From Auanema rhodensis (lineage: Eukaryota > Animalia > Nematoda), in contig OZ059896.1 in NCBI GenBank assembly GCA_964057225.1, positions 4,526,001 to 4,590,000 on the forward strand: a stretch of DNA of 64,000 bases. Direction: 5' to 3'. Shown piece after piece: positions 36,001 through 64,000 of this stretch. The notes beneath the pieces are model-generated. The model was not told the origin of the DNA. It worked only from the letters and a program-made list of their open reading frames with translations, and did no database searches. Position numbers and translations under genes: made by a program. Every line of letters starts with the position of its first letter. The first letter of the stretch is position 1.

Positions 36001-36682
36001 ATAACCAATATCAATAAAAATTTGTTTTTAGACTAATTTGGACATGGGGAATCTAATTTTGAAAACCGCATCTATTTATCTTTCACGTGAAGCGAGTTAC
36101 ATACCAAGTGCACATCACGTGTACATTTAATTAGCATAAATTAAAGTTCACGTAAATTTCAAAGTCATGGTTACCATGAACCAATATCAATAAAAATTTG
36201 TTTTTAGACTAATATGGACATGGGGAATCTAATTTTGGAAACCGCATCTCTTTATCTTTCACGTGAAGCGAGTTACATACCAAGTGCACATCACGTGTAC
36301 ATTTAATTAGCATAAATTAAAGTTCACGTAAATTTCAAAGTCATGGTTACCATGAACCAATATCAATAAAAATTTGTTTTTAGACTAATATGGACATGGG
36401 GAATCTAATTTCGAAAACCGCATATATTTATCTTTCACGTGAAGCGAGTTACATACCAAGTGCACATCACGTGTACATTTAATTAGCATAAATTAAAGTT
36501 CACGTAAATTTCAAAGTCATGGTTACCATGAACCAATATCAATAAAAATTTATTTTTAGACTAATATGGACATGGGGAATCTAATTTCGAAAACCGCATC
36601 TATTTATCTTTCACGTGAAGCGAGTTACATACCAAGTGCACATCACGTGTACATTAAATTAGCATAAATTAAAGTTCACGTA
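1..36682 (+). repeat. Satellite A, 176-bp tandem array, forward orientation (~208 monomers; continues off the left edge)
   Basis: CTTTCACGTGAAGCG recurs at 1, 177, 2641 (15x176) and onward. Monomers differ by only a few substitutions. There is a single net 1-bp phase shift near 17372. Confidence 0.99.
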
Positions 36683-36683
36683 G

Positions 36684-39600
36684 TTCCCCATGTCCATATT
36701 AGTCTAAAAACAAATTTTTATTGATATTGGTTCATGGTAACCATGACTTTGAAATTTACGTGAACTTTAATTTATGCTAATTAAATGTACACGTGATGTG
36801 CACTTGGTATGTAACTCGCTTCACGTGAAAGATAAATAGATGCGGTTTCCAAAATTAGATTCCCCATGTCCATATTAGTCTAAAAACAAATTTTTATTGA
36901 TATTGGTTCATGGTAACCATGACTTTGAAATTTACGTGAACTTTAATTTATGCTAATTTAATGTACACGTGATGTGCACTTGGTATGTAACTCGCTTCAC
37001 GTGAAAGATAAATAGATGCGGTTTTCGAAATTAGATTCCCCATGTCCATATTAGTCTAAAAATAAATTTTTATTGATATTGGTTCATGGTAACCATGACT
37101 TTGAAATTTACGTGAACTTTAATTTATGCTAATTAAATGTACACGTGATGTGCACTTGGTATGTAACTCGCTTCACGTGAAAGATAAATAGATGCGGTTT
37201 TCGAAATTAGATTCCCCATGTCCATATTAGTCTAAAAACAAATTTTTATTGATATTGGTTCATGGTAACCATGACTTTGAAATTTACGTGAACTTTAATT
37301 TATGCTAATTAAATGTACACGTGATGTGCACTTGGTATGTAACTCGCTTCACGTGAAAGATAAAGAGATGCGGTTTCCAAAATTAGATTCCCCATGTCCA
37401 TATTAGTCTAAAAACAAATTTTTATTGATATTGGTTCATGGTAACCATGACTTTGAAATTTACGTGAACTTTAATTTATGCTAATTAAATGTACACGTGA
37501 TGTGCACTTGGTATGTAACTCGCTTCACGTGAAAGATAAATAGATGCGGTTTTCAAAATTAGATTCCCCATGTCCAAATTAGTCTAAAAACAAATTTTTA
37601 TTGATATTGGTTCATGGTAACCATGACTTTGAAATTTACGTGAACTTTAATTTATGCTAATTAAATGTACACGTGATGTGCACTTGGTATGTAACTCGCT
37701 TCACGTGAAAGATAAATAGATGCGGTTTTCGAAATTAGATTCCCCATGTCCATATTAGTCTAAAAACAAATTTTTATTGATATTGGTTCATGGTAACCAT
37801 GACTTTGAAATTTACGTGAACTTTAATTTATGCTAATTTAATGTACACGTGATGTGCACTTGGTATGTAACTCGCTTCACGTGAAAGATAAATAGATGCG
37901 GTTTTCGAAATTAGATTCCCCATGTCCATATTAGTCTAAAAACAAATTTTTATTGATATTGGTTCATGGTAACCATGACTTTGAAATTTACGTGAACTTT
38001 AATTTATGCTAATTAAATGTACACATGATGTGCCCTTGGTATGTAACTCGCTTCACGTGAAAGATAAAGAGATGCGGTTTTCAAAATTAGATTCCCCATG
38101 TCCATATTAGTCTAAAAACAAATTTTTAATGATATTGGTTCATGGTAACCATGACTTTGAAATTTACGTGAACTTTAATTTATGCTAATTAAATGTACAC
38201 GTGATGTGCACTTGGTATGTAACTCGCTTCACGTGAAAGATAAATAGATGCGGTTTTCGAAATTAGATTCCCCATGTCCATATTAGTCTAAAAACAAATT
38301 TTTATTGATATTGGTTCATGGTAACCATGACTTTGAAATTTACGTGAACTTTAATTTATGCTAATTAAATGTACACGTGATGTGCACTTGGTATGTAACT
38401 CGCTTCACGTGAAAGATAAATAGATGCGGTTTCCAAAATTAGATTCCCCATGTCCATATTAGTCTAAAAACAAATTTTTATTGATATTGGTTCATGGTAA
38501 CCATGACTTTGAAATTTACGTGAACTTTAATTTATGCTAATTAAATGTACACGTGATGTGCACTTGGTATGTAACTCGCTTCACATGAAAGATAAATAGA
38601 TGCGGTTTTCGAAATTAGATTCCCCATGTCCATATTAGTCTAAAAACAAATTTTTATTGATATTGGTTCATGGTAACCATGACTTTGAAATTTACGTGAA
38701 CTTTAATTTATGCTAATTAAATGTACACGTGATGTGCACTTGGTATGTAACTCGCTTCACGTGAAAGATAAATAGATGCGGTTTTCAAAATTAGATTCCC
38801 CATGTCCAAATTAGTCTAAAAACAAATTTTTATTGATATTGGTTCATGGTAACCATGACTTTGAAATTTACGTGAACTTTAATTTATGCTAATTAAATGT
38901 ACACGTGATGTGCACTTGGTATGTACCTCGCTTCACGTAAAAGATAAAGAGATGCGGTTTTCAAAATTAGATTCCCCATGTCCATATTAGTCTAAAAACA
39001 AATTTTTATTGATATTGGTTCATGGTAACCATGACTTTGAAATTTACGTGAACTTTAATTTATGCTAATTAAATGTACACATGATGTGCACTTGGTATGT
39101 AACTCGCTTCACGTGAAAGATAAAGAGATGCGGTTTTCAAAATTAGATTCCCCATGTCCATATTAGTCTAAAAACAAATTTTTAATGATATTGGTTCATG
39201 GTAACCATGACTTTGAAATTTACGTGAACTTTAATTTATGCTAATTAAATGTACACGTGATGTGCACTTGGTATGTAACTCGCTTCACGTGAAAGATAAA
39301 TAGATGCGGTTTTCGAAATTAGATTCCCCATGTCCATATTAGTCTAAAAACAAATTTTTATTGATATTGGTTCATGGTAACCATGACTTTGAAATTTACG
39401 TGAACTTTAATTTATGCTAATTAAATGTACACGTGATGTGCACTTGGTATGTAACTCGCTTCACGTGAAAGATAAATAGATGCGGTTTCCAAAATTAGAT
39501 TCCCCATGTCCATATTAGTCTAAAAACAAATTTTTATTGATATTGGTTCATGGTAACCATGACTTTGAAATTTACGTGAACTTTAATTTATGCTAATTTA

Positions 39601-42074
39601 ATGTACACGTGATGTGCACTTGGTATGTAACTCGCTTCACGTGAAAGATAAATAGATGCGGTTTTCGAAATTAGATTCCCCATGTCCATATTAGTCTAAA
39701 AACAAATTTTTATTGATATTGGTTCATGGTAACCATGACTTTGAAATTTACGTGAACTTTAATTTATGCTAATTAAATGTACACGTGATGTGCACTTGGT
39801 ATGTAACTCGCTTCACGTGAAAGATAAATAGATGCGGTTTTCAAAATTAGATTCCCCATGTCCAAATTAGTCTAAAAACAAATTTTTATTGATATTGGTT
39901 CATGGTAACCATGACTTTGAAATTTACGTGAACTTTAATTTATGCTAATTAAATGTACACGTGATGTGCACTTGGTATGTAACTCGCTTCACGTGAAAGA
40001 TAAATAGATGCGGTTTTCGAAATTAGATTCCCCATGTCCATATTAGTCTAAAAACAAATTTTTATTGATATTGGTTCATGGTAACCATGACTTTGAAATT
40101 TACGTGAACTTTAATTTATGCTAATTAAATGTACACATGATGTGCACTTGGTATGTAACTCGCTTCACGTGAAAGATAAAGAGATGCGGTTTTCAAAATT
40201 AGACTCCCCATGTCCATATTAGTCTAAAAACAAATTTTTAATGATATTGGTTCATGGTAACCATGACTTTGAAATTTACGTGAACTTTAATTTATGCTAA
40301 TTAAATGTACACGTGATGTGCACTTGGTATGTAACTCGCTTCACGTGAAAGATAAATAGATGCGGTTTTCGAAATTAGATTCCCCATGTCCATATTAGTC
40401 TAAAAACAAATTTTTATTGATATTGGTTCATGGTAACCATGACTTTGAAATTTACGTGAACTTTAATTTATGCTAATTAAATGTACACGTGATGTGCACT
40501 TGGTATGTAACTCGCTTCACGTGAAAGATAAAGAGATGCGGTTTCCAAAATTAGATTCCCCATGTCCATATTAGTCTAAAAACAAATTTTTATTGATATT
40601 GGTTCATGGTAACCATGACTTTGAAATTTACGTGAACTTTAATTTATGCTAATTAAATGTACACGTGATGTGCACTTGGTATGTAACTCGCTTCACGTGA
40701 AAGATAAATAGATGCGGTTTTCAAAATTAGATTCCCCATGTCCAAATTAGTCTAAAAACAAATTTTTATTGATATTGGTTCATGGTAACCATGACTTTGA
40801 AATTTACGTGAACTATAATTTATGCTAATTAAATGTACACGTGATGTGCACTTGGTATGTAACTCGCTTCACGTGAAAGATGAAGAGATGCGGTTTTCAA
40901 AATTAGATTCCCCATGTCCATATTAGTTCACAAACAAATTTTTATTGATATTGGTTCATGGTAACCATGACTTTGAAATTTACGTGAACTTTAATTAATG
41001 CCAATTAAATGTACACGTGATGTGCCCTTGGTATGTAACTCGCTTCACGTGAGAGATAAAGAGATGCGGTTTTCAAAATTAGATTCCCCATGTCCATATT
41101 AGTCTAAAAACAAATTTTTATTGATATTGGTGCATGGTAACCATGACTTTGAAATTTACGTGAACTTTAATTTATGCTAATTAATTGTACACGTGATGTG
41201 CACTTGGTATGTAACTCGCTTCACGTGAAAGATAAATAGATGCGGTTTTCGAAATTAGATTCCCCATGTCCATATTAGTCTAAAAACAAATTTTTATTGA
41301 TATTGGTTCATGGTAACCATGACTTTGAAATTTACGTGAACTTTAATTTATGCTAATTAAATGTACACGTGATGTGCACTTGGTATGTAACTCGCTTCAC
41401 GTGAAAAATAAAGAGATGCGGTTTTCAAAATTAGATTCCCCATGTCCATATTAGTCTAAAAACAAATTTTTATTGACATTGGTTCATGGTAACCATGACT
41501 TTGAAATTTACGTGAACTTTAATTTATGCTAATTAAATGTACACGTGATGTGCACTTGGTATGTAACTCGCTTCACGTGAAAGATGAAGAGATGCGGTTT
41601 TCAAAATTAGATTCCCCATGTCCATATTAGTCTAAAAACAAATTTTTATTGATATTGGTTCATGGTAACCGTGACTTTGAAATTTACGTGAACTTTAATT
41701 TATGCTAATTAAATGTACACGTGATGTGCACTTGGTATGTAACTCGCTTCACGTGAAAGATGAAGAGATGCGGTTTCCAAAATTAGATTCCCCATGTCCA
41801 TATTAGTTCACAAACAAATTTTTATTGATATTGGTTCATGGTAACCATGACTTTGAAATTTACGTGAACTTTAATTTATGCTAATTAAATGTACACGTGA
41901 TGTGCACTTGGTATGTAACTCGCTTCACGTGAAAGATGAATAGATGCGGTTTTCGAAATTAGATTCCCCATGTCCATATTAGTCTAAAAACAAATTTTTA
42001 TTGATATTGGTTCATGGTAACCATGACTTTGAAATTTACGTGAACTTTAATTTATGCTAATTAAATGTACACGT
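36684..42074 (-). repeat. Satellite A, inverted block (~30.6 monomers)
   Basis: Reverse complement of the A monomer (TTCCCCATGTCCATATTAGTC...) begins after ...GTTCACGTA-G at 36683. The period stays 176 (TTGATATTGG at 36721, 39361, 42001). The block ends at ...GTACACGT 42074. Confidence 0.99.
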
Positions 42075-44438
42075 TCGGACGTTTATTGTTCAGTATTACA
42101 GGTTTTAACGTTAAGTATAGTACGAAAAGATATGCATTAGTTCCATACAATATGAACATAAAGATAATAACATAAAAAATTACAAATATCAGTGAAGTAT
42201 AGTTAGAAAAAAGAGTGTTAGGGTTGCAGTTAGCTCATCATACCTATCCGCATATGCATCGTATATGTCAACGTCTCTTTTTTAAGCAGGGGTTTGTTCA
42301 GTTTGAGAAACTGACCTCTCTTTAAAAGCTAACCAGGTGCGGTGGAACTTAGAAATAAGTCAAGCCCGTTCTGGAAGTCAGAGGTAACTAGCACCCGATC
42401 CGTATGGCTAATGCCCATAAGATTCAATGGTGAAGTAACAGTGAAAAAAAGTATGGGAAAAGAGGATAGTTGATCAAATGACACATAGACGAAGATAATA
42501 GAAGAGTTGCAATAACCCAAATAGTACAGAGCAAGTAAAAGAAACAATTGAAATAAACATGTTAATATTAATATTAATCTAAAAGGAAAATACTCAAATG
42601 TTTTCGAAAGCTGCTGATTTTTTCTAGACAAACAATGTTGTTTGGAATTGAGTTCCATGTATTGATGGCTCGATATTCGATGCCTTTTCTGGACTGAGTT
42701 TTCCTTAGATTAGGAAATTCAATAGTCCATGGATGCCGTCTAAGACTATGAGAGTGGTTTCTGAGTGAAAAAAGATTATCTGTAATAGTTGATTTAATTT
42801 GTTTGAAATAAAAAAGCAAATCAAAAATTTGTCTTCTGAAAGCTAGTTCTTCACTCCCTAAGAAAGAGAGTTGATCTTTGTATTTTAAGTTCAAACCAGA
42901 TCGCATGAAAACAGCACGCAAAAATTTTTTTTGTACGTTTTCTAAGCGTGTTTTGCATCTATTATCTTGCGGAGACCAGATAATAGAAGCATATTCAAGT
43001 ATAGGTCTTATATAGCAGCAGAAAAGTTTGAACATCAAGACTGGTGATCTTGAATAAAAGCATCTGAGAATTATGCGGCATTTTCTCGCTGCATCGTTGG
43101 TTATCTTATCTATATGTTTATCAAACATAAGATTGTGTTCGGTTAGAACACCCAGGTCTTTATAGCTTTGAACGTTAGCAAGAATAATGTCACCAAACAT
43201 AAATTTTTGGACTTCAGAATTTTTTTTACTTGGAACCACCATGATTTTTGATTTGGAGGTGTTAACGCTCATACCGTTTTGTTGACACCATACTTTCAAC
43301 TGATTGAGAGCACATTGTAAACTAACCGGACTTTTGCTGTAAATTTTAAGATCATCAGCATAAAGAACAGAATTGACATCGCTGGGAAATTCTGATGTGA
43401 TGTCGTTGATATAAAACAGGAATAGGAGAGGACCGAGAACAGTGCCTTGAGGAACTCCACAAGTAAGTGGTTTAGATGGAGATAGTGCTTTTTTGATAAG
43501 AACAGAAAAGGATCTACCAGAAATAAAACTTGTAAGAAAAGAGTGAAGAGAACCTTTGATACCCATGGAGTTGAGTTTATGTGAGAGGACGGCATGATTT
43601 ATTAAATCGAATGCTTTTGAGAAGTCAATGAAAGCAACAAAAACTGTATCGTTGCAGTCGAGAGAAGATCTCCAACTTACGTGACTGTCTAGGATGGCAG
43701 AAACAGTATTCCTATTAGGAAGAAAGGCATGTTGATAGTTAGGAATGGAGCCAGAAGATATGCCAAATGTAAGAAGAGGAGTGCGAACAAGACGTTCAAA
43801 CACTTTAGAGAGGCTAGAAGTGAGAGAGATTGGTCGATAGTTTTCTGGATTTTTAGTGACACCAGATTTGAAGACAGGGCGGATCCAGGCCACTTTCCAA
43901 TCAGGAGGGCAGGTTGAACTAACAAGAAGGTTGTGAAAGATGAAAGCTAATGGATTAGCTAGAGGAGCAGCACATTGTTTAAGAAAGTAGTACGGAATAC
44001 CGTCTGGAGATGTGGATACCCTAAGTGGAAGATGATAGAGTGTTTTATATACAATTTCAGGTGATATATCAACAAAGTCGATATAGGAGCCGGAACTGGT
44101 AGAAGTAGAGCTATAAGTAGGTTGAGATGTTAAAAAGAGAGGGTTAACAGTAAAAACGTTGGAAAAAACGGAGGCCTTGTCAGCATCCGAAGAAACTGTT
44201 TGTTGATTAATGGTGAGGTTTGGGACGTCCGATGAATTGCCACCTAACCGTTCTCTACAGAAGCGATGGAAAAGTCTGGGATTTCTGGAATTAGCAATGC
44301 GTTCTTCTTCTGATGCATACTTGCGTTTTGTGAGTCTATCGAGAGCAGCACAGAGTTTCTTACGGCGAATTTCGTCAGATGGGTATAGAGAGCAACTAAG
44401 TTTTTTAATTTGGTTGTGAAGTTTTTTGATTTCACGAT
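42075..44438 (-). mobile_element. 5'-truncated non-LTR retrotransposon (LINE), CR1-like (CR1/L2/Jockey group), ~2.36 kb including ~500-bp 3' UTR
   Basis: The only non-tandem sequence in the window. It encodes a non-LTR RT, has AATAAA 7 nt before its 3' end, and lacks the endonuclease domain, ORF1 and LTRs. Confidence 0.93.
42082..42087 (-). promoter_or_regulatory. Putative polyadenylation signal AATAAA at the LINE 3' end
   Basis: TTTATT on the + strand, 7 nt from the LINE/satellite A junction. Confidence 0.55.
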
Positions 44439-44439
44439 C
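42574..44439 (-). pseudogene. LINE ORF2 fragment: pre-RT region, reverse transcriptase and C-terminal domain (~621 aa open frame, N-terminally truncated)
   Basis: Motifs: SPDGIP..LKQCA..LA.PL, WKVAWIRPVFKSG, NYRPISLTS, QHAF, FIDFSKAFD, GVPQGTVLGP, YADD, YKDLGV, and the CR1-type C-terminus IRPILEYASIIWSP..LENVQKKF. Manual translation shows the frame stays open 182 codons upstream of the track's GTG 'start' at 43893, up to the satellite B junction. Confidence 0.93.
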
Positions 44440-45672
44440 AAATCTGATAACACAGATCGACGCAGCTTAAAAATCCGCATCGAATGCACTATATTACATT
44501 GAGGAAAGCTTAATACAAAAATTAGTTATGATCGTTTGAAAAATGATGCATTAGTGTATGTTGAGTTTCCATGTACACTCAACATTGCTTCCAAAAACAT
44601 TTTGACAAAAATTTTTTCGAAAAATTTCAAGATAATTTAGCAAAAAGTAGATGTTTTTAGATTCCTTTTTTCAAGGCAAAAACGATGGACAATGTTATTC
44701 AACGAAAAAATTAATTCTTCAGGGTGAAAATCGAGGATATAAGTGTGAACTTATATCAGATGATATCTAGGTGCATTTTTAAGCTAGCGCAAATCTGATA
44801 ACACAGATCGACGCAGCTTAAAAAACCGCAGCGGATGCACTATATTACATTGAGGAAAGCTTAATACAAAAATTAGTTATGATCGTTTGAAAAATGATGC
44901 ATTAGTGTATGTTGAGTTTCCATGTACACTCAACATTGCTTCCAAAAACATTTTGACAAAATTTTTTCGAAAAATTTCAAAATAATTTAGCAAAAAGTAG
45001 ATGTTTTTAGATTCCTTCTTTCAAGGCAAAAACGATGGACAATGTTATTCAACGAAAAAATTAATTCTTCAGGGTGAAAATCGAGGATATAAGTGTGAAC
45101 TTATATCAGTTAATATCTCGGTGCATTTTCAAGCTAGCGCAAATCTGATAACACAGATCGACGCAGCTTAAAAATCCGCATCGAATGCACTATATTACAT
45201 TGAGGAAAGCTTAATACAAAAATTAGTTATGATCGTTTGAAAAATGATGCATTAGTGTATGTTGAGTTTCCATGTACACTCAACATTGCTTCCAAAAACA
45301 TTTTGACAAAATTTTTTCGAAAAATTTCAAAATAATTTCGCAAAAAGTAGATGTTTTTAGATTCCTTTTTTTGAGGCAAAAACGATGGACAATGTTATTC
45401 AACGAAAAAATTAATTCTTCAGGGTGAAAATCGAGGATATAAGTGTGAACTTATATCAGTTAATATCTCGGTGCATTTTTAAGCTAGCGCAAATCTGATA
45501 ACACAGATCGACGCAGCTTAAAAATCCGCATCGAATGCACTATATTACATTGAAGAAAGCTTAATACAAAAATTAGTTATGATCGTTTGAAAAATTATGC
45601 ATTAGTGTATGTTGAGTTTCCATGTACACTCAACATTGCTTCCAAAAACATTTTGACAAAAATTTTTTCGAA
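44439..45672 (-). repeat. Satellite B, short inverted arm (~3.5 monomers of 350/351 bp)
   Basis: CAAATCTGATAACACAGATCGACG recurs at 44439, 44790, 45140 and 45490. It is the reverse complement of the array to the right. Confidence 0.98.
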
Positions 45673-45694
45673 TTTTTTTTCGAAAATTTTTAAA
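45673..45694. other. 22-bp junction filler at the satellite B inversion point
   Basis: TTTTTTTTCGAAAATTTTTAAA is out of register with both arms but resembles the adjacent TTTTTTCGAAAAATTT motif. Confidence 0.8.
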
Positions 45695-48600
45695 ATGGAA
45701 ACTCAACATACACTAATGCATAATTTTTCAAACGATCATAACTAATTTTTGTATTAAGCTTTCTTCAATGTAATATAGTGCATTCGATGCGGATTTTTAA
45801 GCTGCGTCGATCTGTGTTATCAGATTTGCGCTAGCTTAAAAATGCACCGAGATATTAACTGATATAAGTTCACACTTATATCCTCGATTTTCACCCTGAA
45901 GAATTAATTTTTTCGTTGAATAACATTGTCCATCGTTTTTGCCTCAAAAAAAGGAATCTAAAAACATCTACTTTTTGCGAAATTATTTTGAAATTTTTCG
46001 AAAAAATTTTGTCAAAATGTTTTTGGAAGCAATGTTGAGTGTACATGGAAACTCAACATACACTAATGCATAATTTTTCAAACGATCATAACTAATTTTT
46101 GTATTAAGCTTTCTTCAATGTAATATAGTGCATTCGATGCGGATTTTTAAGCTGCGTCGATCTGTGTTATCAGATTTGCGCTAGCTTAAAAATGCACCGA
46201 GATATTAACTGATATAAGTTCACACTTATATCCTCGATTTTCACCCTGAAGAATTAATTTTTTCGTTGAATAACATTGTCCATCGTTTTTGCCTCAAAAA
46301 AAGGAATCTAAAAACATCTACTTTTTGCGAAATTATTTTGAAATTTTTCGAAAAAATTTTGTCAAAATGTTTTTGGAAGCAATGTTGAGTGTACATGGAA
46401 ACTCAACATACACTAATGCATCATTTTTCAAACAATCATAACTAATTTTTGTATTAAGCTTTCCTCAATGTAATATAGTGCATTCGATGCGGATTTTTAA
46501 GCTGCGTCGATCTGTGTTATCAGATTTGCGCTAGCTTGAAAATGCACCGAGATATCAACTGATATAAGTTCACACTTATATCCTCGATTTTCACCCTGAA
46601 GAATTAATTTTTTCGTTGAATAACATTGTCCATCGTTTTTGCCTTGAAAGAAGGAATCTAAAAACATCTACTTTTTGCTAAATTATTTTGAAATTTTTCG
46701 AAAAAATTTTGTCAAAATGTTTTTGGAAGCAATGTTGAGTGTACATGGAAACTCAACATACACTAATGCATCATTTTTCAAACGATCATAACTAATTTTT
46801 GTATTAAGCTTTCCTCAATGTAATATAGTGCATTCGATGCGGATTTTTAAGCTGCGTCGATCTGTGTTATCAGATTTGCGCTAGCTTGAAAATGCACCGA
46901 GATATCAACTGATATAAGTTCACACTTATATCCTCGATTTTCACCCTGAAGAATTAATTTTTTCGTTGAATAACATTGTCCATCGTTTTTGCCTTGAAAG
47001 AAGGAATCTAAAAACATCTACTTTTTGCTAAATTATTTTGAAATTTTTCGAAAAAATTTTGTCAAAATGTTTTTGGAAGCAATGTTGAGTGTACATGGAA
47101 ACTCAACATACACTAATGCATCATTTTTCAAACGATCATAACTAATTTTTGTATTAAGCTTTCCTCAATGTAATATAGTGCATCCGCTGCGGTTTTTTAA
47201 GCTGCGTCGATCTGTGTTATCAGATTTGCGCTAGCTTAAAAATGCACCTAGATATCATCTGATATAAGTTCACACTTATATCCTCGATTTTCACCCTGAA
47301 GAATTAATTTTTTCGTTGAATAACATTGTCCATCGTTTTTGCCTTGAAAAAAGGAATCTAAAAACATCTACTTTTTGCTAAATTATCTTGAAATTTTTCG
47401 AAAAAATTTTTGTCAAAATGTTTTTGGAAGCAATGTTGAGTGTACATGGAAACTCAACATACACTAATGCATCATTTTTCAAACGATCATAACTAATTTT
47501 TGTATTAAGCTTTCCTCAATGTAATATAGTGCATTCGATGCGGATTTTTAAGCTGCGTCGATCTGTGTTATCAGATTTGCGCTAGCTTAAAAATGCACCT
47601 AGATATCATCTGATATAAGTTCACACTTATATCCTCGATTTTCACCCTGAAGAATTAATTTTTTCGTTGAATAACATTGTCCATCGTTTTTGCCTTGAAA
47701 AAAGGAATCTAAAAACATCTACTTTTTGCTAAATTATTTTGAAATTTTTCGAAAAAATTTTTGTCAAAATGTTTTTGGAAGCAATGTTGAGTGTACATGG
47801 AAACTCAACATACACTAATGCATCATTTTTCAAACGATCATAACTAATTTTTGTATTAAGCTTTCCTCAATGTAATCTAGTGCATTCGATGCGGTTTTTT
47901 AAGCTGCGTCGATCTGTGTTATCAGATTTGCGCTAGCTTAAAAATGCACCTAGATATCATCTGATATAAGTTCACACTTATATCCTCGATTTTCACCCTG
48001 AAGAATTAATTTTTTCGTTGAATAACATTGTCCATCGTTTTTGCCTTGAAAGAAGGAATCTAAAAACAGCTACTCTTTGCTAAATTATTTTGAAATTTTT
48101 CGAAAAAATTTTTGTCAAAATGTTTTTGGAAGCAATGTTGAGTGTACATGGAAACTCAACATACACTAATGCATCATTTTTCAAAAGATCATAACTAATT
48201 TTTGTATTTAGCGTTTCTCAATGTAGTATAGTGCATTCGATGCGGATTTTTAAGCTGCGTCGATCTGTACTATCAGATTTGCGCTAGCTTAAAAATGCAC
48301 CTAGATATCATCTGATATAAGTTCACACTTATATCCTCGATTTTCACCCTGAAGAATTAATTTTTTCGTTGAATAACATTGTCCATCGTTTTTGCCTTGA
48401 AAAAAGGAATCTAAAAACATCTACTTTTTGCTAAATTATTTTGAAATTTTTCGAAAAAATTTTTGTCAAAATGTTTTTGGAAGCAATGTTGAGTGTACAT
48501 GGAAACTCAACATACACTAATGCATAATTTTTCAAACGATCATAACTAATTTTTGTATTGAGCTTTTCTCAATGTAATATAGTGCATTCGATGCGGATTT

Positions 48601-51600
48601 TTAAGCTGCGTCGATCTGTGTTATCAGATTTGCGCTAGCTTAAAAATGCACCGAGATATTAACTGATATAAGTTCACACTTATATCCTCGATTTTCACCC
48701 TGAAGAATTAATTTTTTCGTTGAATAACATTGTCCATCGTTTTTGCCTCAAAAAAAGGAATCTAAAAACATCTACTTTTTGCGAAATTATTTTGAAATTT
48801 TTCGAAAAAATTTTGTCAAAATGTTTTTGGAAGCAATGTTGAGTGTACATGGAAACTCAACATACACTAATGCATCATTTTTCAAACAATCATAACTAAT
48901 TTTTGTATTAAGCTTTCCTCAATGTAATATAGTGCATTCGATGCGGATTTTTAAGCTGCGTCGATCTGTGTTATCAGATTTGCGCTAGCTTGAAAATGCA
49001 CCGAGATATCAACTGATATAAGTTCACACTTATATCCTCGATTTTCACCCTGAAGAATTAATTTTTTCGTTGAATAACATTGTCCATCGTTTTTGCCTTG
49101 AAAGAAGGAATCTAAAAACATCTACTTTTTGCTAAATTATTTTGAAATTTTTCGAAAAAATTTTGTCAAAATGTTTTTGGAAGCAATGTTGAGTGTACAT
49201 GGAAACTCAACATACACTAATGCATCATTTTTCAAAAGATCATAACTAATTTTTGTATTAAGCTTTCCTCAATGTAATATAGTGCATTCGATGCGGATTT
49301 TTAAGCTGCGTCGATCTGTGTTATCAGATTTGCGCTAGCTTAAAAATGCACCTAGATATCATCTGATATAAGTTCACACTTATATCCTCGATTTTCACCC
49401 TGAAGAATTAATTTTTTCGTTGAATAACATTGTCCATCGTTTTTGCCTTGAAAAAAGGAATCTAAAAACATCTACTTTTTGCTAAATTATTTTGAAATTT
49501 TTCGAAAAAATTTTTGTCAAAATGTTTTTGGAAGCAATGTTGAGTGTACATGGAAACTCAACATACACTAATGCATCATTTTTCAAACGATCATAACTAA
49601 TTTTTGTATTAAGCTTTTCTCAATGTAATATAGTGCATTCGATGCGGATTTTTAAGCTGCGTCGATCTGTGTTATCAGATTTGCGCTAGCTTAAAAATGC
49701 ACCGAGATATTAACTGATATAAGTTCACACTTATATCCTCGATTTTCACCCTGAAGAATTAATTTTTTCGTTGAATAACATTGTCCATCGTTTTTGCCTC
49801 TAAAAAAGGAATCTAAAAACATCTACTTTTTGCGAAATTATTTTGAAATTTTTCGAAAAAATTTTGTCAAAATGTTTTTGGAAGCAATGTTGAGTGTACA
49901 TGGAAACTCAACATACACTAATGCATCATTTTTCAAACGATCATAACTAATTTTTGTATTAAGCTTTCCTCAATGTAATATAGTGCATTCGATGCGGTTT
50001 TTTAAGCTGCGTCGATCTGTGTTATCAGATTTGCGCTAGCTTAAAAATGCACCGAGATATTAACTGATATAAGTTCACACTTATATCCTCGATTTTCACC
50101 CTGAAGAATTAATTTTTTCGTTGAATAACATTGTCCATCGTTTTTGCCTTGAGAGAAGGAATCTAAAAACATCTACTTTTTGCTAAATTATTTTGAAATT
50201 TTTCGAAAAAATTTTTGTCAAAATGTTTTTGGAAGCAATGTTGAGTGTACATGGAAACTCAACATACACTAATGCATCATTTTTCAAAAGATCATAACTA
50301 ATTTTTGTATTAAGCGTTTCTCAATGTAGTATAGTGCATTCGATGCGGATTTTTAAGCTGCGTCGATCTAGGTTATCAGATTTGCGCTAGCTTAAAAATG
50401 CACCGAGATATTAACTGATATAAGTTCACACTTATATCCTCGATTTTCACCCTGAAGAATTAATTTTTTCGTTGAATAACATTGTCCATCGTTTTTGCCT
50501 CAAAAAAAGGAATCTAAAAACATCTACTTTTTGCGAAATTATTTTGAAATTTTTCGAAAAAATTTTGTCAAAATGTTTTTGGAAGCAATGTTGAGTGTAC
50601 ATGGAAACTCAACATACACTAATGCATAATTTTTCAAACGATCATAACTAATTTTTGTATTAAGCTTTCTTCAATGTAATATAGTGCATTCGATGCGGAT
50701 TTTTAAGCTGCGTCGATCTGTGTTATCAGATTTGCGCTAGCTTAAAAATGCACCGAGATATTAACTGATATAAGTTCACACTTATATCCTCGATTTTCAC
50801 CCTGAAGAATTAATTTTTTCGTTGAATAACATTGTCCATCGTTTTTGCCTCAAAAAAAGGAATCTAAAAACATCTACTTTTTGCGAAATTATTTTGAAAT
50901 TTTTCGAAAAAATTTTGTCAAAATGTTTTTGGAAGCAATGTTGAGTGTACATGGAAACTCAACATACACTAATGCATCATTTTTCAAACAATCATAACTA
51001 ATTTTTGTATTAAGCTTTCCTCAATGTAATATAGTGCATTCGATGCGGATTTTTAAGCTGCGTCGATCTGTGTTATCAGATTTGCGCTAGCTTAAAAATG
51101 CACCGAGATATTAACTGATATAAGTTCACACTTATATCCTCGATTTTCACCCTGAAGAATTAATTTTTTCGTTGAATAACATTGTCCATCGTTTTTGCCT
51201 CAAAAAAAGGAATCTAAAAACATCTACTTTTTGCGAAATTATCTTGAAATTTTTCGAAAAAATTTTTGTCAAAATGTTTTTGGAAGCAATGTTGAGTGTA
51301 CATGGAAACTCAACATACACTAATGCATCATTTTTCAAACGATCATAACTAATTTTTGTATTAAGCTTTCCTCAATGTAATATAGTGCATTCGATGCGGA
51401 TTTTTAAGCTGCGTCGATCTGTGTTATCAGATTTGCGCTAGCTTAAAAATGCACCTAGATATCATCTGATATAAGTTCACACTTATATCCTCGATTTTCA
51501 CCCTGAAGAATTAATTTTTTCGTTGAATAACATTGTCCATCGTTTTTGCCTTGAAAAAAGGAATCTAAAAACATCTACTTTTTGCTAAATTATTTTGAAA

Positions 51601-54600
51601 TTTTTCGAAAAAATTTTTGTCAAAATGTTTTTGGAAGCAATGTTGAGTGTACATGGAAACTCAACATACACTAATGCATCATTTTTCAAACGATCATAAC
51701 TAATTTTTGTATTAAGCTTTCCTCAATGTAATCTAGTGCATTCGATGCGGTTTTTTAAGCTGCGTCGATCTGTGTTATCAGATTTGCGCTAGCTTAAAAA
51801 TGCACCTAGATATCATCTGATATAAGTTCACACTTATATCCTCGATTTTCACCCTGAAGAATTAATTTTTTCGTTGAATAACATTGTCCATCGTTTTTGC
51901 CTTGAAAGAAGGAATCTAAAAACAGCTACTCTTTGCTAAATTATTTTGAAATTTTTCGAAAAAATTTTTGTCAAAATGTTTTTGGAAGCAATGTTGAGTG
52001 TACATGGAAACTCAACATACACTAATGCATCATTTTTCAAAAGATCATAACTAATTTTTGTATTTAGCGTTTCTCAATGTAGTATAGTGCATTCGATGCG
52101 GATTTTTAAGCTGCGTCGATCTGTACTATCAGATTTGCGCTAGCTTAAAAATGCACCTAGATATCATCTGATATAAGTTCACACTTATATCCTCGATTTT
52201 CACCCTGAAGAATTAATTTTTTCGTTGAATAACATTGTCCATCGTTTTTGCCTTGAAAAAAGGAATCTAAAAACATCTACTTTTTGCTAAATTATTTTGA
52301 AATTTTTCGAAAAAATTTTTGTCAAAATGTTTTTGGAAGCAATGTTGAGTGTACATGGAAACTCAACATACACTAATGCATAATTTTTCAAACGATCATA
52401 ACTAATTTTTGTATTGAGCTTTTCTCAATGTAATATAGTGCATTCGATGCGGATTTTTAAGCTGCGTCGATCTGTGTTATCAGATTTGCGCTAGCTTAAA
52501 AATGCACCGAGATATTAACTGATATAAGTTCACACTTATATCCTCGATTTTCACCCTGAAGAATTAATTTTTTCGTTGAATAACATTGTCCATCGTTTTT
52601 GCCTCAAAAAAAGGAATCTAAAAACATCTACTTTTTGCGAAATTATTTTGAAATTTTTCGAAAAAATTTTGTCAAAATGTTTTTGGAAGCAATGTTGAGT
52701 GTACATGGAAACTCAACATACACTAATGCATCATTTTTCAAACAATCATAACTAATTTTTGTATTAAGCTTTCCTCAATGTAATATAGTGCATTCGATGC
52801 GGATTTTTAAGCTGCGTCGATCTGTGTTATCAGATTTGCGCTAGCTTGAAAATGCACCGAGATATCAACTGATATAAGTTCACACTTATATCCTCGATTT
52901 TCACCCTGAAGAATTAATTTTTTCGTTGAATAACATTGTCCATCGTTTTTGCCTTGAAAGAAGGAATCTAAAAACATCTACTTTTTGCTAAATTATTTTG
53001 AAATTTTTCGAAAAAATTTTGTCAAAATGTTTTTGGAAGCAATGTTGAGTGTACATGGAAACTCAACATACACTAATGCATCATTTTTCAAAAGATCATA
53101 ACTAATTTTTGTATTAAGCTTTCCTCAATGTAATATAGTGCATTCGATGCGGTTTTTTAAGCTGCGTCGATCTGTGTTATCAGATTTGCGCTAGCTTAAA
53201 AATGCACCTAGATATCATCTGATATAAGTTCACACTTATATCCTCGATTTTCACCCTGAAGAATTAATTTTTTCGTTGAATAACATTGTCCATCGTTTTT
53301 GCCTTGAAAAAAGGAATCTAAAAACATCTACTTTTTGCTAAATTATTTTGAAATTTTTCGAAAAAATTTTTGTCAAAATGTTTTTGGAAGCAATGTTGAG
53401 TGTACATGGAAACTCAACATACACTAATGCATCATTTTTCAAACGATCATAACTAATTTTTGTATTAAGCTTTTCTCAATGTAATATAGTGCATTCGATG
53501 CGGATTTTTAAGCTGCGTCGATCTGTGTTATCAGATTTGCGCTAGCTTAAAAATGCACCGAGATATTAACTGATATAAGTTCACACTTATATCCTCGATT
53601 TTCACCCTGAAGAATTAATTTTTTCGTTGAATAACATTGTCCATCGTTTTTGCCTCAAAAAAAGGAATCTAAAAACATCTACTTTTTGCGAAATTATTTT
53701 GAAATTTTTCGAAAAAATTTTGTCAAAATGTTTTTGGAAGCAATGTTGAGTGTACATGGAAACTCAACATACACTAATGCATCATTTTTCAAACGATCAT
53801 AACTAATTTTTGTATTAAGCTTTCCTCAATGTAATATAGTGCATTCGATGCGGTTTTTTAAGCTGCGTCGATCTGTGTTATCAGATTTGCGCTAGCTTAA
53901 AAATGCACCGAGATATTAACTGATATAAGTTCACACTTATATCCTCGATTTTCACCCTGAAGAATTAATTTTTTCGTTGAATAACATTGTCCATCGTTTT
54001 TGCCTTGAGAGAAGGAATCTAAAAACATCTACTTTTTGCTAAATTATTTTGAAATTTTTCGAAAAAATTTTTGTCAAAATGTTTTTGGAAGCAATGTTGA
54101 GTGTACATGGAAACTCAACATACACTAATGCATCATTTTTCAAACGATCATAACTAATTTTTGTATTAAGCTTTCCTCAATGTAATATAGTGCATTCGAT
54201 GCGGATTTTTAAGCTGCGTCGATCTGTGTTATCAGATTTGCGCTAGCTTAAAAATGCACCTAGATATCATCTGATATAAGTTCACACTTATATCCTCGAT
54301 TTTCACCCTGAAGAATTAATTTTTTCGTTGAATAACATTGTCCATCGTTTTTGCCTTGAAAAAAGGAATCTAAAAACATCTACTTTTTGCTAAATTATTT
54401 TGAAATTTTTCGAAAAAATTTTTGTCAAAATGTTTTTGGAAGCAATGTTGAGTGTACATGGAAACTCAACATACACTAATGCATCATTTTTCAAACGATC
54501 ATAACTAATTTTTGTATCAAGCTTTTCTCAATGTAATATAGTGCATTCGATGCGGATTTTTAAGCTGCGTCGATCTGTGTTATCAGATTTGCGCTAGCTT

Positions 54601-57600
54601 AAAAATGCACCGAGATATTAACTGATATAAGTTCACACTTATATCCTCGATTTTCACCCTGAAGAATTAATTTTTTCGTTGAATAACATTGTCCATCGTT
54701 TTTGCCTCAAAAAAAGGAATCTAAAAACATCTACTTTTTGCGAAATTATTTTGAAATTTTTCGAAAAAATTTTGTCAAAATGTTTTTGGAAGCAATGTTG
54801 AGTGTACATGGAAACTCAACATACACTAATGCATCATTTTTCAAACGATCATAACTAATTTTTGTATTAAGCTTTCCTCAATGTAATATAGTGCATTCGA
54901 TGCGGTTTTTTAAGCTGCGTCGATCTGTGTTATCAGATTTGCGCTAGCTTAAAAATGCACCGAGATATTAACTGATATAAGTTCACACTTATATCCTCGA
55001 TTTTCACCCTGAAGAATTAATTTTTTCGTTGAATAACATTGTCCATCGTTTTTGCCTTGAGAGAAGGAATCTAAAAACATCTACTTTTTGCTAAATTATT
55101 TTGAAATTTTTCGAAAAAATTTTTGTCAAAATGTTTTTGGAAGCAATGTTGAGTGTACATGGAAACTCAACATACACTAATGCATCATTTTTCAAAAGAT
55201 CATAACTAATTTTTGTATTAAGCGTTTCTCAATGTAGTATAGTGCATTCGATGCGGATTTTTAAGCTGCGTCGATCTAGGTTATCAGATTTGCGCTAGCT
55301 TAAAAATGCACCGAGATATTAACTGATATAAGTTCACACTTATATCCTCGATTTTCACCCTGAAGAATTAATTTTTTCGTTGAATAACATTGTCCATCGT
55401 TTTTGCCTCAAAAAAAGGAATCTAAAAACATCTACTTTTTGCGAAATTATTTTGAAATTTTTCGAAAAAATTTTGTCAAAATGTTTTTGGAAGCAATGTT
55501 GAGTGTACATGGAAACTCAACATACACTAATGCATCATTTTTCAAACGATCATAACTAATTTTTGTATTAAGCTTTCCTCAATGTAATATAGTGCATTCG
55601 ATGCGGTTTTTAAAGCTGCGTCGATCTGTGTTATCAGATTTGCGCTAGCTTAAAAATACACCGAGATATTAACAGATATAAGTTCACACTTATATCCTCG
55701 ATTTTCACCCTGAAGAATTAATTTTTTCGTTGAATAACATTGTCCATCGTTTTTGCCTCAAAAAAAGGAATCTAAAAACATCTACTTTTTGCGAAATTAT
55801 TTTGAAATTTTTCGAAAAAATTTTGTCAAAATGTTTTTGGAAGCAATGTTGAGTGTACATGGAAACTCAACATACACTAATGCATCATTTTTCAAACGAT
55901 CATAACTAATTTTTGTGATGAGCGTTTCTCCATGTAGTATAATGCATTCGATGCGGATTTTTAAGCTGCGTCGATCTGTGTTATCAGATTTGCGCTAGCT
56001 TGAAAATGCACCGAGATATTAACTGATATAAGTTCACACTTATATCCTCGATTTTCACCCTGAAGAATTAATTTTTTCGTTGAATAACATTGTCCATCGT
56101 TTTTGCCTTGAGAGAAGGAATCTAAAGACATCTACTTTTTGCTAAATTATTTTGAAATTTTTCGAAAAAATTTTTGTCAAAATGTTTTTGGAAGCAATGT
56201 TGAGTGTACATGGAAACTCAACATACACTAATGCATCATTTTTCAAAAGATCATAACTAATTTTTGTATTAAGCGTTTCTCAATGTAGTATAGTGCATTC
56301 GATGCGGATTTTTAAGCTGCGTCGATGTGTACTATCAGATTTGCGCTGGCTTGAAAATGCACCGAGATATCAACTGATATAAGTTCACACCTATATCCTC
56401 GATTTTCACCCTGAAGAATTAATTTTTTCGTTGAATAACATTGTCCATCGTTTTTGCCTTGAAAGAAGGAATCTAAAAGCATCTACTTTTTGCGAAATTA
56501 TTTTGAAATTTTTCGAAAAAATTTTGTCAAAATGTTTTTGGAAGCAATGTTGAGTGTACATGGAAACTCAACATACACTAATGCATCATTTTTCAAACGA
56601 TCATAACTAATTTTTGTGATGAGCGTTTCTCCACGTAGTATAATGCATTCGATGCGGATTTTTAAGCTGCGTCGATCTGTGTTATCAGATTTGCGCTAGC
56701 TTAAAAATGCACCTAGATATCATCTGATATAAGTTCACACTTATATCCTCGATTTTCACCCTGAAGAATTAATTTTTTCGTTGAATAACATTGTCCATCG
56801 TTTTTGCCTTGAAAAAAGGAATCTAAAAACATCTACTTTTTGCTAAATTATTTTGAAATTTTTCGAAAAAATTTTTGTCAAAATGTTTTTGGAAGCAATG
56901 TTGAGTGTACATGGAAACTCAACATACACTAATGCATAATTTTTCAAACGATCATAACTAATTTTTGTATTGAGCTTTTCTCAATGTAATATAGTGCATT
57001 CGATGCGGATTTTTAAGCTGCGTCGATCTGTGTTATCAGATTTGCGCTAGCTTAAAAATGCACCGAGATATTAACTGATATAAGTTCACACTTATATCCT
57101 CGATTTTCACCCTGAAGAATTAATTTTTTCGTTGAATAACATTGTCCATCGTTTTTGCCTCAAAAAAAGGAATCTAAAAACATCTACTTTTTGCGAAATT
57201 ATTTTGAAATTTTTCGAAAAAATTTTGTCAAAATGTTTTTGGAAGCAATGTTGAGTGTACATGGAAACTCAACATACACTAATGCATCATTTTTCAAACA
57301 ATCATAACTAATTTTTGTATTAAGCTTTCCTCAATGTAATATAGTGCATTCGATGCGGATTTTTAAGCTGCGTCGATCTGTGTTATCAGATTTGCGCTAG
57401 CTTGAAAATGCACCGAGATATCAACTGATATAAGTTCACACTTATATCCTCGATTTTCACCCTGAAGAATTAATTTTTTCGTTGAATAACATTGTCCATC
57501 GTTTTTGCCTTGAAAGAAGGAATCTAAAAACATCTACTTTTTGCTAAATTATTTTGAAATTTTTCGAAAAAATTTTGTCAAAATGTTTTTGGAAGCAATG

Positions 57601-63600: not shown

Positions 63601-64000
63601 TTTTCAAACGATCATAACTAATTTTTGTGATGAGCGTTTCTCCATGTAGTATAGTGCATTCGATGCGGATTTTTAAGCTGCGTCGATCTGTGTTATCAGA
63701 TTTGCGCTAGCTTAAAAATGCACCGAGATATCAACTGATATAAGTTCACACTTATATCCTCGATTTTCACCCTGAAGAATTAATTTTTTCGTTGAATAAC
63801 ATTGTCCATCGTTTTTGCCTTGAAAGAAGGAATCTAAAAACATCTACTTTTTGCTAAATTATTTTGAAATTTTTCGAAAAAATTTTTGTCAAAATGTTTT
63901 TGGAAGCAATTTTGAGTGTACATGGAAACTCAACATACACTAATGCATCATTTTTCAAACGATCATAACTAATTTTTGTATTAAGCTTTCCTCAATGTAA
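45695..64000 (+). repeat. Satellite B, 350/351-bp tandem array, main orientation (~52 monomers; continues off the right edge)
   Basis: AATGCACCGA at 45841 and 46191 gives a period of 350. The 351-bp units have an extra T in CGAAAAAATTTT(T)GTC. Confidence 0.99.

Follow-up and report, generated by a model that had tools for sequence, protein, structure and literature searches.

The window, the whole 64,000-nt stretch of DNA analysed here, opens with a long + strand array of satellite A (positions 1 to 36682). TRF, probe matches and monomer tables identify it as about 208 monomers of the 176-bp AT-1 repeat of Auanema rhodense. The FISH probe published for AT-1 is 28 nt long (A. rhodense preprint, Methods) and has 162 exact matches in the window against 0 expected. 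Since the 176-bp repeat contains this probe, we assign the window to the germline-only DNA that somatic cells eliminate. The orientation of the main A array is the one that would receive an AT-1 LINE on the + strand. Self-matches and monomer tables show that the array is organised towards its right end by a 14-monomer (2,464-bp) higher-order repeat, and it stops at 36682 at monomer phase 73, 1 base beyond the third ACGT of the monomer (phase 69-72). One filler base (G, 36683) forms a head-to-head A/A junction, after which satellite A continues on the − strand as an inverted arm. The first part of this arm (36684 to 40878, about 24 monomers) shares the 14-monomer repeat of the main array, which it matches exactly over 1,282 bp and 929 bp. 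In the 1.2 kb adjoining the LINE (40879 to 42074, − strand), monomer tables show that monomers 1 and 6 have the variant set 123G/125G/126A/172C, found in 0 of the 208 main-array monomers; this stretch recurs exactly, and often, at other places on the chromosome arm, in every case on the opposite strand. The switch between the two parts of the arm, near 40879, is in register.

The LINE follows on the − strand, with 499 nt of 3′ UTR (42075 to 42573) and the C-terminal part of ORF2 (42574 to 44438). It meets satellite B at a non-homologous joint (44438/44439). A short B arm on the + strand (44439 to 45672, 3.5 monomers of a 351-bp repeat) is inverted relative to the main B array, which occupies 45695 to 64000 on the − strand with at least 52 monomers (TRF for both). 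Between the two B segments lies a 22-nt filler (45673 to 45694) that resembles an adjacent TTCGAA quasi-palindrome. Satellite B is probably the AT-2 repeat, judging from its matches near both ends of several large contigs and from the description in the A. rhodense preprint. The block from 36684 to 45672 (9 kb) is thus reversed relative to both large arrays, with a head-to-head junction at each end, and because the satellites flip at 36683 and at 45673-45694, the LINE/B joint lies inside it. The TRF repeat boundaries fall at 42074 and 44439, and LINE sequence fills all 2,364 bp from 42075 to 44438, which bears out the statement of a preliminary description that the element is the sole DNA between the two satellites. 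That description also proposed that the retroelement marks, and may have created, a satellite boundary. The LINE does sit at the A/B joint; that it created the boundary is not established. A and B blocks alternate many times along the chromosome arm that carries the window.

The fragment corresponds to the 3′ half (nt 2354-4718), on the − strand, of a 4,718-nt full-length copy on contig C82, and is without the endonuclease domain, ORF1 and the 5′ UTR. Its frame (− strand) has no interruption between the first codon, at the 5′ break, and the stop at 42574-42576, a run of 620 codons plus stop (aa 325-944 of 944), and contains a reverse transcriptase domain (RVT_1, E = 2.5e-35). The full-length copy matches RVT_1 with E = 4.8e-35, and the full-length copy L033 matches Exo_endo_phos at ORF2 aa 40-232 (E = 5.6e-10). 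By its predicted domains the element is a 4.7-kb APE-type non-LTR retrotransposon (LINE) with APE and RT; a protein Atlas search with it returned generic APE+RT clusters only. Its 3′ end reads ...AATAAACGTCCGA and has no poly-A tail. The element had been described as young, which is borne out: an alignment of 1,727 bp with the copy on C5 shows 5 mismatches and 1 gap, and one of 2,368 bp with a full-length copy shows 10 mismatches. A handful of young copies was found in the assembly, two of them full length with both reading frames open.

We tabulated the flanks of the young copies genome-wide. All 3′ ends (6/6) abut satellite A at monomer phase 35/36, in one orientation. In the window the A/LINE junction falls at an ACGT (phase 36-39) and is 2 bp shorter than in the five siblings, and is therefore private to this copy. 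The 5′ truncation points differ among the six copies, as do the flanking monomer variants in every copy, so we take them as independent insertions; segmental duplication as the origin of the common A/LINE junction was rejected on the same flanking variants. Because all six share the ACGT and the orientation, the A-side junction at 42074/42075 is best read as a normal target-primed junction. These insertion sites place the start of cleavage by the predicted endonuclease, and of reverse transcription, at a single ACGT in the 176-bp monomer. Among the best-scoring matches, all copies of at least 98% identity lie in A; two fragments at C4:12.39 Mb, 93% identical, are flanked by DNA that belongs to neither satellite.

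Four siblings have the arrangement A-LINE-A with target-site duplications (TSDs). These copies with normal junctions are 4,718, 4,682, 861 and 483 nt long, share a common 3′ end, and have upstream ends at phase 39, 39, 40 and 67. TSD length is bimodal, 5-6 nt or about 29-33 nt: three normal copies have 5-6 nt, the copy C82a has about 33 nt, and the rearranged C5 copy shows an overlap of ~29 nt. For the C5 and C82a copies, the upstream flank stops at phase 63-67. The 5′ end of the C5 copy is a LINE snap-back with a 9-nt filler and 3-nt microhomology, so that aberrant 5′ ends occur in two of the six young copies, this one and the window copy.

In the window copy only the 5′ end is abnormal, being joined to satellite B with 1 nt of microhomology. 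As the preliminary description had stated, the copy has no TSD: its flanks belong to different repeats, and that single nucleotide is all the LINE/B joint shares. A search of the 181-Mb assembly for a second LINE-B joint found none, and a search of this single inbred-line assembly for a direct A/B joint at the same bases, the empty allele named earlier as evidence against a joining of the arrays by the insertion, also found none. The window thus combines a canonical endonuclease-site 3′ junction with a 5′ joint to non-contiguous DNA and the lack of a TSD. Different DNA on either side and no TSD would also be expected if LINE cDNA had been used, independently of the endonuclease, to repair a double-strand break already present between A and B, one of the origins first suggested. 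We consider this capture highly unlikely, because the 3′ junction uses the canonical endonuclease site and lies no more than 2 bp from the position in 5/5 siblings, a site that a random break would hit with a chance of about 1 in 100.

The B/B junction has the structure of a fold-back inverted duplication, with reverse-complement arms and a short spacer. Positions 45247-45623 are the exact reverse complement of 45695-46071, a 377-bp inverted repeat at the junction, and 44439-45111 are the exact reverse complement of 46907-47579; from these matches, the short B arm is a mirrored copy minus two monomers. The arms are separated by a 71-nt spacer (45624-45672 plus the 22-nt filler). In-place inversion of the short B arm was rejected, as its pre-inversion neighbours would be off monomer register. 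At the A/A junction, a mirror register offset by 249 nt was the best among near-axis registers (3 mismatches in 900 nt), a result confounded by the higher-order repeats. The end of the inverted A arm exactly matches a higher-order-repeat copy 5 kb away, and self-matches of the main A array reach up to 2.8 kb; after calibration against the array's own self-matches, we withdrew the candidate that the inverted A arm is a recent inverted duplicate. An ungapped mirror test, likewise confounded by higher-order repeats, gave no favoured register for the A flip and an ambiguous one for the B flip.

Other simple schemes were also rejected. Staggered-break inversion and duplication/inverted-triplication predict a LINE in the main A array or another order of copies, and neither is seen. 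Comparison of 36682 with 42074 gives a would-be TSD of 38 nt with one difference, at phase 47, which is a higher-order-repeat variant; the two ends are therefore not from the same monomer. A plain target-site inversion that duplicated 38 nt fits in phase and fails on this difference, so that a multi-monomer cut must be assumed, and that version was kept.

The three junctions at 36683, 44438/44439 and 45673-45694 are unique in the assembly, as they would be if at least one of them reflected a read that was chimeric or palindromic, or an error in how the satellite graph was traversed. The 2.4-kb LINE fragment and the 9-kb inverted block should each, however, fit within single HiFi reads of typical length. 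The private 3′ junction was not borrowed from another LINE locus, a mis-join would have no second LINE-B locus to pass through, and the mirrored B arm differs by whole-monomer deletions, unlike the product of a palindromic read. The locus is also internal to a contig of several megabases, from an inbred line. An artefact is therefore improbable in our judgement, even with the roughly 29-fold HiFi coverage of repeat-rich regions and the hifiasm assembly reported in the A. rhodense preprint, which count in its favour.

A similarly low probability attaches to a templated patch, in which break-induced replication with serial template switching would have copied part of an existing LINE with its A flank from another locus and then B, with no reverse transcription at this locus. 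The count of 4-5 switches in 9 kb, with 0-1 nt of microhomology or fillers of 1 nt and 22 nt and one in-register homologous switch, together with mirrored arms that show monomer slippage, fits microhomology-mediated break-induced replication. The junction at the canonical endonuclease site speaks against it, and the donor should have stayed intact, yet a search of the assembly for a locus with the window's 3′ junction or flank variants found none. The lack of a donor locus in the assembly points to the fragment being the original insertion and not a templated copy.

Our preferred reading, to which we give a probability of about 0.4, is that the insertion of an AT-1-specific LINE was resolved abnormally, with the free cDNA end joined to broken B DNA as part of a compound repair. 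Target-primed reverse transcription began at the ACGT of an A monomer, as the 3′ junction documents, and covered 2.36 kb. Instead of being rejoined to the upstream half of the cut monomer, the free cDNA end may have been ligated, over 1 nt of microhomology, to a break in the adjacent 351-bp satellite. That repair would also have made the head-to-head junctions at 36683 and 45673-45694, between which the LINE, 5.4 kb of A and 1.2 kb of B now run opposite to the two large arrays. A variant of this model takes the A(−) end at 36682 as a second endonuclease-type break, at ACGT+1 and near the upstream ends of two siblings. Under this model the LINE marks the boundary because its insertion intermediate was among the misjoined DNA ends.

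The aberrant-resolution reading is supported by the site specificity (6/6), by the existence of normal A-LINE-A siblings and by the recurrence of aberrant 5′ ends (2/6). LINE DNA appears, on a rough estimate, to make up a very small part of the satellite blocks, so unrelated breakpoints should rarely land inside LINE copies. If one flip is placed at random in each array, the post hoc chances of junctions this near the LINE are ~0.13 and 0.064, ~0.008 jointly. The A(−) end at phase 73 fits the endonuclease pattern; a phase drawn at random would land in the pooled zones in ~7% of cases (post hoc). Against this reading, all parts are equally young and the sequence gives no timing, there is no ACGT at A 36684, B 44439 or the B flip breakpoints, and the in-register switch near 40879 requires a further homologous step.

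The LINE may also have been passive, a normal A-LINE-A insertion later cut by an unrelated rearrangement in which the 5′ half and the upstream A flank were lost. End-joining deletion or inversion, fold-back and breakage cycles, or replication template switching could all have produced such a loss, and we regard it as a serious, if somewhat doubtful, possibility. Orientation flips occur in other A arrays, for example as mixed strands at C1:18.17-18.20 Mb, and the B flip is a classic fold-back with no endonuclease motif. The copies of the would-be TSD are not identical, and the in-register switch in the A arm shows that ordinary array recombination acted at the locus. Yet LINE DNA would be a tiny target, and breakpoints fall in 2/6 young copies; three rare junctions are packed into the 9 kb around the element, and the A(−) end falls inside the zone of the siblings' upstream ends. 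A simple later inversion through the LINE would, moreover, have left the 5′ half at 36682, where it is absent. The preliminary description had offered both routes, an insertion that joined the arrays or a later rearrangement that removed the 5′ part, and both are possible and inseparable from sequence alone. The LINE/B joint is one of at least three non-homologous junctions within 9 kb, which indicate a compound rearrangement and not a simple insertion-mediated deletion.

A bolder extension of the aberrant-resolution reading would make the satellite-specific LINE endonuclease a recurrent architect of the germline-only genome, whose failed or multiple cuts invert, delete and juxtapose blocks. 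The break at 36682 (ACGT+1) would then be the reciprocal end of the insertion that welded cDNA to B, and the LINE would have created the A/B boundary. We consider this extension unlikely. The LINE target is present in every monomer of multi-megabase arrays that form a large part of the germline-restricted genome, and so could steadily supply breaks; such breaks could shape where satellite domains begin, end and flip. There is ample documentation of misjoining LINE insertions from human tumours and cell models; germline cases that are fixed and have all junctions resolved are rarer, and those in satellite DNA are rarer still. The inbred line, the HiFi assembly and the few young copies, two of them full length and two with aberrant 5′ ends, make this a tractable system.

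Among known systems, R1 and R2 target 28S rDNA, and TRAS/SART target insect telomeric repeats. Like these target-specific LINEs, the window LINE family inserts at the same nucleotide in one orientation, with variable 5′ truncation and short TSDs. It differs from them in that its target is a non-coding 176-bp satellite eliminated by somatic cells and in its bimodal TSD length. Fold-back inversions and inverted duplications arise from breakage-fusion-bridge cycles or replication template switching (FoSTeS/MMBIR). They share with the window head-to-head junctions and short fillers and, on its B side, exact inverted-repeat arms around the 71-nt spacer and monomer slippage in the mirrored copy. Unlike such systems, the window has two fold-back-like junctions that face each other across a retroelement fragment, and duplication is shown on the B side only.

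L1 insertion-mediated deletions and chimeric L1 insertions were reportedly described by Gilbert et al. in 2002, Symer et al. in 2002 and Han et al. in 2005. Both resemble the window in their 5′-truncated element, flanks that were not neighbours before and 5′ microhomology. In the window, the element is flanked by two unlike satellites and sits, in addition, in a block that is inverted between head-to-head junctions. For human LINE-1 ORF2p, a 2024 preprint by Mendez-Dorantes et al. (PMC11702581, sections 7 and 10) describes reverse-transcribed cDNA ends ligated to distal ends, reciprocal-end inversions and foldbacks at ORF2p-made ends, and LINE-1-caused rearrangements are also a subject of the PCAWG L1 study (PMC7058536). 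The experimental spectrum of the preprint is a precedent for the aberrant-resolution reading. In human LINE-1, as in the window, a canonical endonuclease-site 3′ junction is combined with an end ligated far off with little or no homology and with no TSD; DNA at the reciprocal end can be inverted, and foldbacks lie beside or contain reverse-transcribed sequence. The window differs from human LINE-1 in that causality is inferred here and not observed, in the lack of a poly-A tail, in that the structure is fixed in the germline of an inbred nematode line and is not a somatic or cell-culture event, and in an endonuclease specific to one satellite site, with thousands of targets in cis. Taken by itself, we tentatively view the locus as one more scar of a known type, a misfired jumping-gene insertion that rearranged the DNA around it.

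Nearly all of the window, which is AT-rich (~32% GC), consists of two tandem repeats, a 176-bp satellite (A) and a 351-bp satellite (B). A preprint on DNA elimination in Auanema rhodense (bioRxiv 10.64898/2026.08.27.747507) gives in its Methods the sequence of a 28-nt FISH probe for AT-1; this probe has 162 exact matches in the window against 0 expected and is located in A. According to that preprint, AT-1 is an autosome-terminal repeat eliminated by somatic cells from the 12-cell stage onward, and the germline assembly of inbred line APS4 (HiFi/hifiasm) comprises 180.9 Mb. Because A is AT-1 and is eliminated in the soma, the window (C4:4,526,001-4,590,000) lies in germline-only DNA. Our searches covered an assembly of 180.9 Mb in 112 contigs (G000), in which B matches close to both ends of several large contigs; B is probably AT-2, the second terminal repeat of the preprint.

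The main A array (1-36682) varies in higher-order structure along its length. Toward the left end, exact probe matches alternate between 176- and 352-bp spacing, and from ~26 kb on the unit is a higher-order repeat of 14 monomers (2,464 bp). The array repeats itself exactly over as much as 2.8 kb (1-2802 = 4753-7554), and there is one 1-bp deletion near 17.4 kb. The main B array (45695-64000) also shows higher-order periodicity.

The LINE sequence at 42075-44438 (− strand) lies directly between A and B, with A on one side and B on the other, so the preliminary description was right that nothing else separates the satellites and that there is no target-site duplication (TSD). One frame stays open for 620 codons, from the codon next to the 5′ break up to a stop at 42574, and includes a reverse transcriptase match (RVT_1, E = 2.5e-35); the 499-nt 3′ UTR ends in AATAAACGTCCGA and has no poly-A tail. 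Two full-length copies of 4.7 kb, both on contig C82, keep two reading frames open: ORF1 (420 aa) has no Pfam match, and ORF2, of 944 aa in one copy and 951 aa in the other, encodes an APE endonuclease domain and RVT_1. The fragment corresponds to nt 2354-4718 of the full-length copy measuring 4,718 nt (ORF2 aa 325-944), in agreement with the 5′ truncation described earlier, and the proposed youth of the element is borne out by 5 mismatches and 1 gap over 1,727 bp relative to its closest sibling, a copy on contig C5. The 5′ UTR of one full-length element starts with six copies of a 17-bp tandem repeat, TCGTTGACCTAGTTTCC (L033 1703-1805); in the other (L034, reverse complement, ~3907-3990) the repeat differs in number and form, and that element also begins with an (AC)n run.

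A search with the fragment and its 3′ UTR revealed six young 3′ ends: that of the window, two on C82, and a single one on each of C5, C81 and C83. All six adjoin A at one position and in one orientation (…CGTCCGA joined to ACACGTGTACATTT); of the ACGT sites in the A monomer, three in number (phases 4, 36 and 69, counted within the monomer), the target is the second. As the LINE is satellite-specific, the A-side junction of the window is normal. It is 2 bp shorter than in the siblings (junction followed by ACGTGTAC) and is therefore private rather than borrowed from another copy. The young copies differ in length and their neighboring A monomers carry different variants every time, indicating independent events. 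Four siblings are complete A-LINE-A insertions, with upstream flanks ending at phases 39, 39 and 40 (TSD 5-6 nt) or at phase 67 (TSD ~33 nt), and TSD length across the family is bimodal, at 5-6 nt or ~29-33 nt.

At the 5′ junction of the C82 copy with the ~33-nt TSD (L033 1640-1710), the upstream flank ends in AAAGTT just before the third ACGT, and between this flank and the 5′ UTR lie 29 additional nt, made up of TC and a second, 27-nt copy of the target region. Related LINE families (~69% nucleotide identity; loci L009-L064, several contigs) also lie within A, yet point the other way with respect to the monomer, implying a second preferred site or strand. The sole relatives of the fragment's own subfamily seen outside A are two ~1-kb LINE pieces, 93% identical to its family (L007 and L008; G000:C4:12389991-12390851 and 12397623-12398483), which lie in opposite orientations 7.6 kb apart with flanks that are neither A nor B.

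The abnormal joint is the B-side (5′) one only. In sense orientation, B (…TTATCAGATTTG) passes directly into LINE nt 2354, the two sharing a single G. The 120-nt junction sequence has no second occurrence in the assembly, B adjoins the LINE at no other locus among those retrieved, and no direct joint of A to B at the same bases was found in the assembly. We consider an assembly artefact improbable.

Both satellites flip near this joint, which is thereby enclosed in an inverted block of 9 kb. A reverses orientation at 36683, where one G serves as filler, and continues inverted from 36684 to 42074; B runs from 44439 to 45672 and flips across a 22-nt filler (45673-45694) resembling the adjacent TTCGAA quasi-palindrome. 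Neither flip junction has a second copy in the assembly. In B, 45247-45623 and 45695-46071 are exact reverse complements of each other (377 bp each, 71-nt spacer), as are the 673 bp adjoining the LINE and 46907-47579; the short B arm is thus a mirrored copy of the main-array start minus two monomers, and the B side is a fold-back inverted duplication. The short arm is ~99.1-99.2% identical to the main array at registers 6, 11 and 13 monomers apart and 95.3-98.9% at others.

Most of the A arm is made of the 14-monomer higher-order repeat also found in the main array, with which it shares exact stretches of 1,282 bp and 929 bp. A mirror offset of 249 nt fits best near the axis (3 mismatches/900 nt), but since the main array matches itself exactly up to 2.8 kb, the arm could be either an inverted duplicate or a resident piece that was turned around. 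The 1.2 kb of A adjoining the LINE differ from the remainder of the arm. The variant set 123G/125G/126A/172C occurs in the first and sixth monomers beside the LINE and in 0/208 main-array monomers, and exact copies of this stretch are common elsewhere on C4 (2.86-5.38 Mb), always on the other strand; the A arm thus also holds an in-register, homologous switch near 40879. The LINE/B joint is part of a compound rearrangement that also includes two flips of fold-back-like type. The earlier alternatives, that the insertion joined two arrays or that a later rearrangement removed the 5′ part of the element with its other A flank, stand in part and can be made sharper: the A flank is the designed target of the element, and only the 5′ joint is abnormal.

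We tentatively favor a LINE-linked origin by aberrant resolution during insertion (probability roughly 0.42), based on four arguments and on a match to features of human L1 ORF2p. First, aberrant 5′ ends occur in two of the six young copies, the window and C5, although LINE DNA appears, by rough estimate, to make up a very small share of these satellite blocks. The C5 copy (L004, G000:C5:21796864-21801589, locus 1500-4218) consists of A, 1,727 bp from the 3′ part of the LINE, a filler of 9 nt (TTGATGACA), an inverted 983-bp stretch of that same LINE region, 3 nt of microhomology, and A in the orientation of the first flank, with a ~29-nt overlap of the A flanks; it is a snap-back insertion. 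A further head-to-head LINE structure, with flanks other than A, is possible at L016 (G000:C3:10136858-10142055, locus 1501-5190), where 175 bp separate a related-family LINE from a subsequent LINE piece of opposite strand.

Second, three rare junctions fall within 9 kb around the LINE. Assuming a random flip position in each array, the joint chance of both flips lying this close to the LINE is ~0.008, calculated from coordinates and, like all statistics behind this reading, post hoc. A rearrangement after insertion and unrelated to it is only somewhat less likely: on coordinates, A also flips in arrays with no LINE seen at C1:18.17-18.20 Mb, where monomers change strand several times in 25 kb with irregular spacing (G000:C1:18174346-18199928), so orientation flips within AT-1 arrays extend beyond the window. 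One simple version, a later inversion with its breakpoint within the LINE, is excluded, as the LINE 5′ half would remain attached at 36682. As a third argument, the assembly contains no donor that combines this 3′ junction with such flanks; the fragment is therefore the original insertion, and a templated patch is unlikely.

Fourth, the end of the main A array falls at phase 73, a single base beyond the third ACGT, and the upstream ends of the C5 copy and the C82 copy with the long TSD fall at phases 63-67; a random phase would lie inside the sibling-used zones ~7% of the time (post hoc). Several points weaken this reading. Breakpoints other than the 36682 end and the LINE/A junction are without ACGT. 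The 38 nt common to the 36682 end and the 42074 flank differ at phase 47, a higher-order-repeat variant. These ends are thus not halves of one monomer, which rules out a clean target-site inversion. Under aberrant resolution, an insertion would have begun at an A target and then been resolved abnormally, giving the 5′ joint to B; cuts in different A monomers would have to be assumed, since the two ends are not one monomer's halves.

In kind, the locus is a LINE-associated rearrangement scar, a phenomenon already known; what is unusual is the setting, with a satellite-specific LINE inside DNA that is lost from the worm's soma. In experimental clones, human L1 ORF2p gives rise to ligation of reverse-transcribed ends to distant ones, to inversion of genomic DNA at the reciprocal end, and to foldbacks at or near endonuclease-made ends (PMC11702581). 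The features of the present locus match these outcomes.
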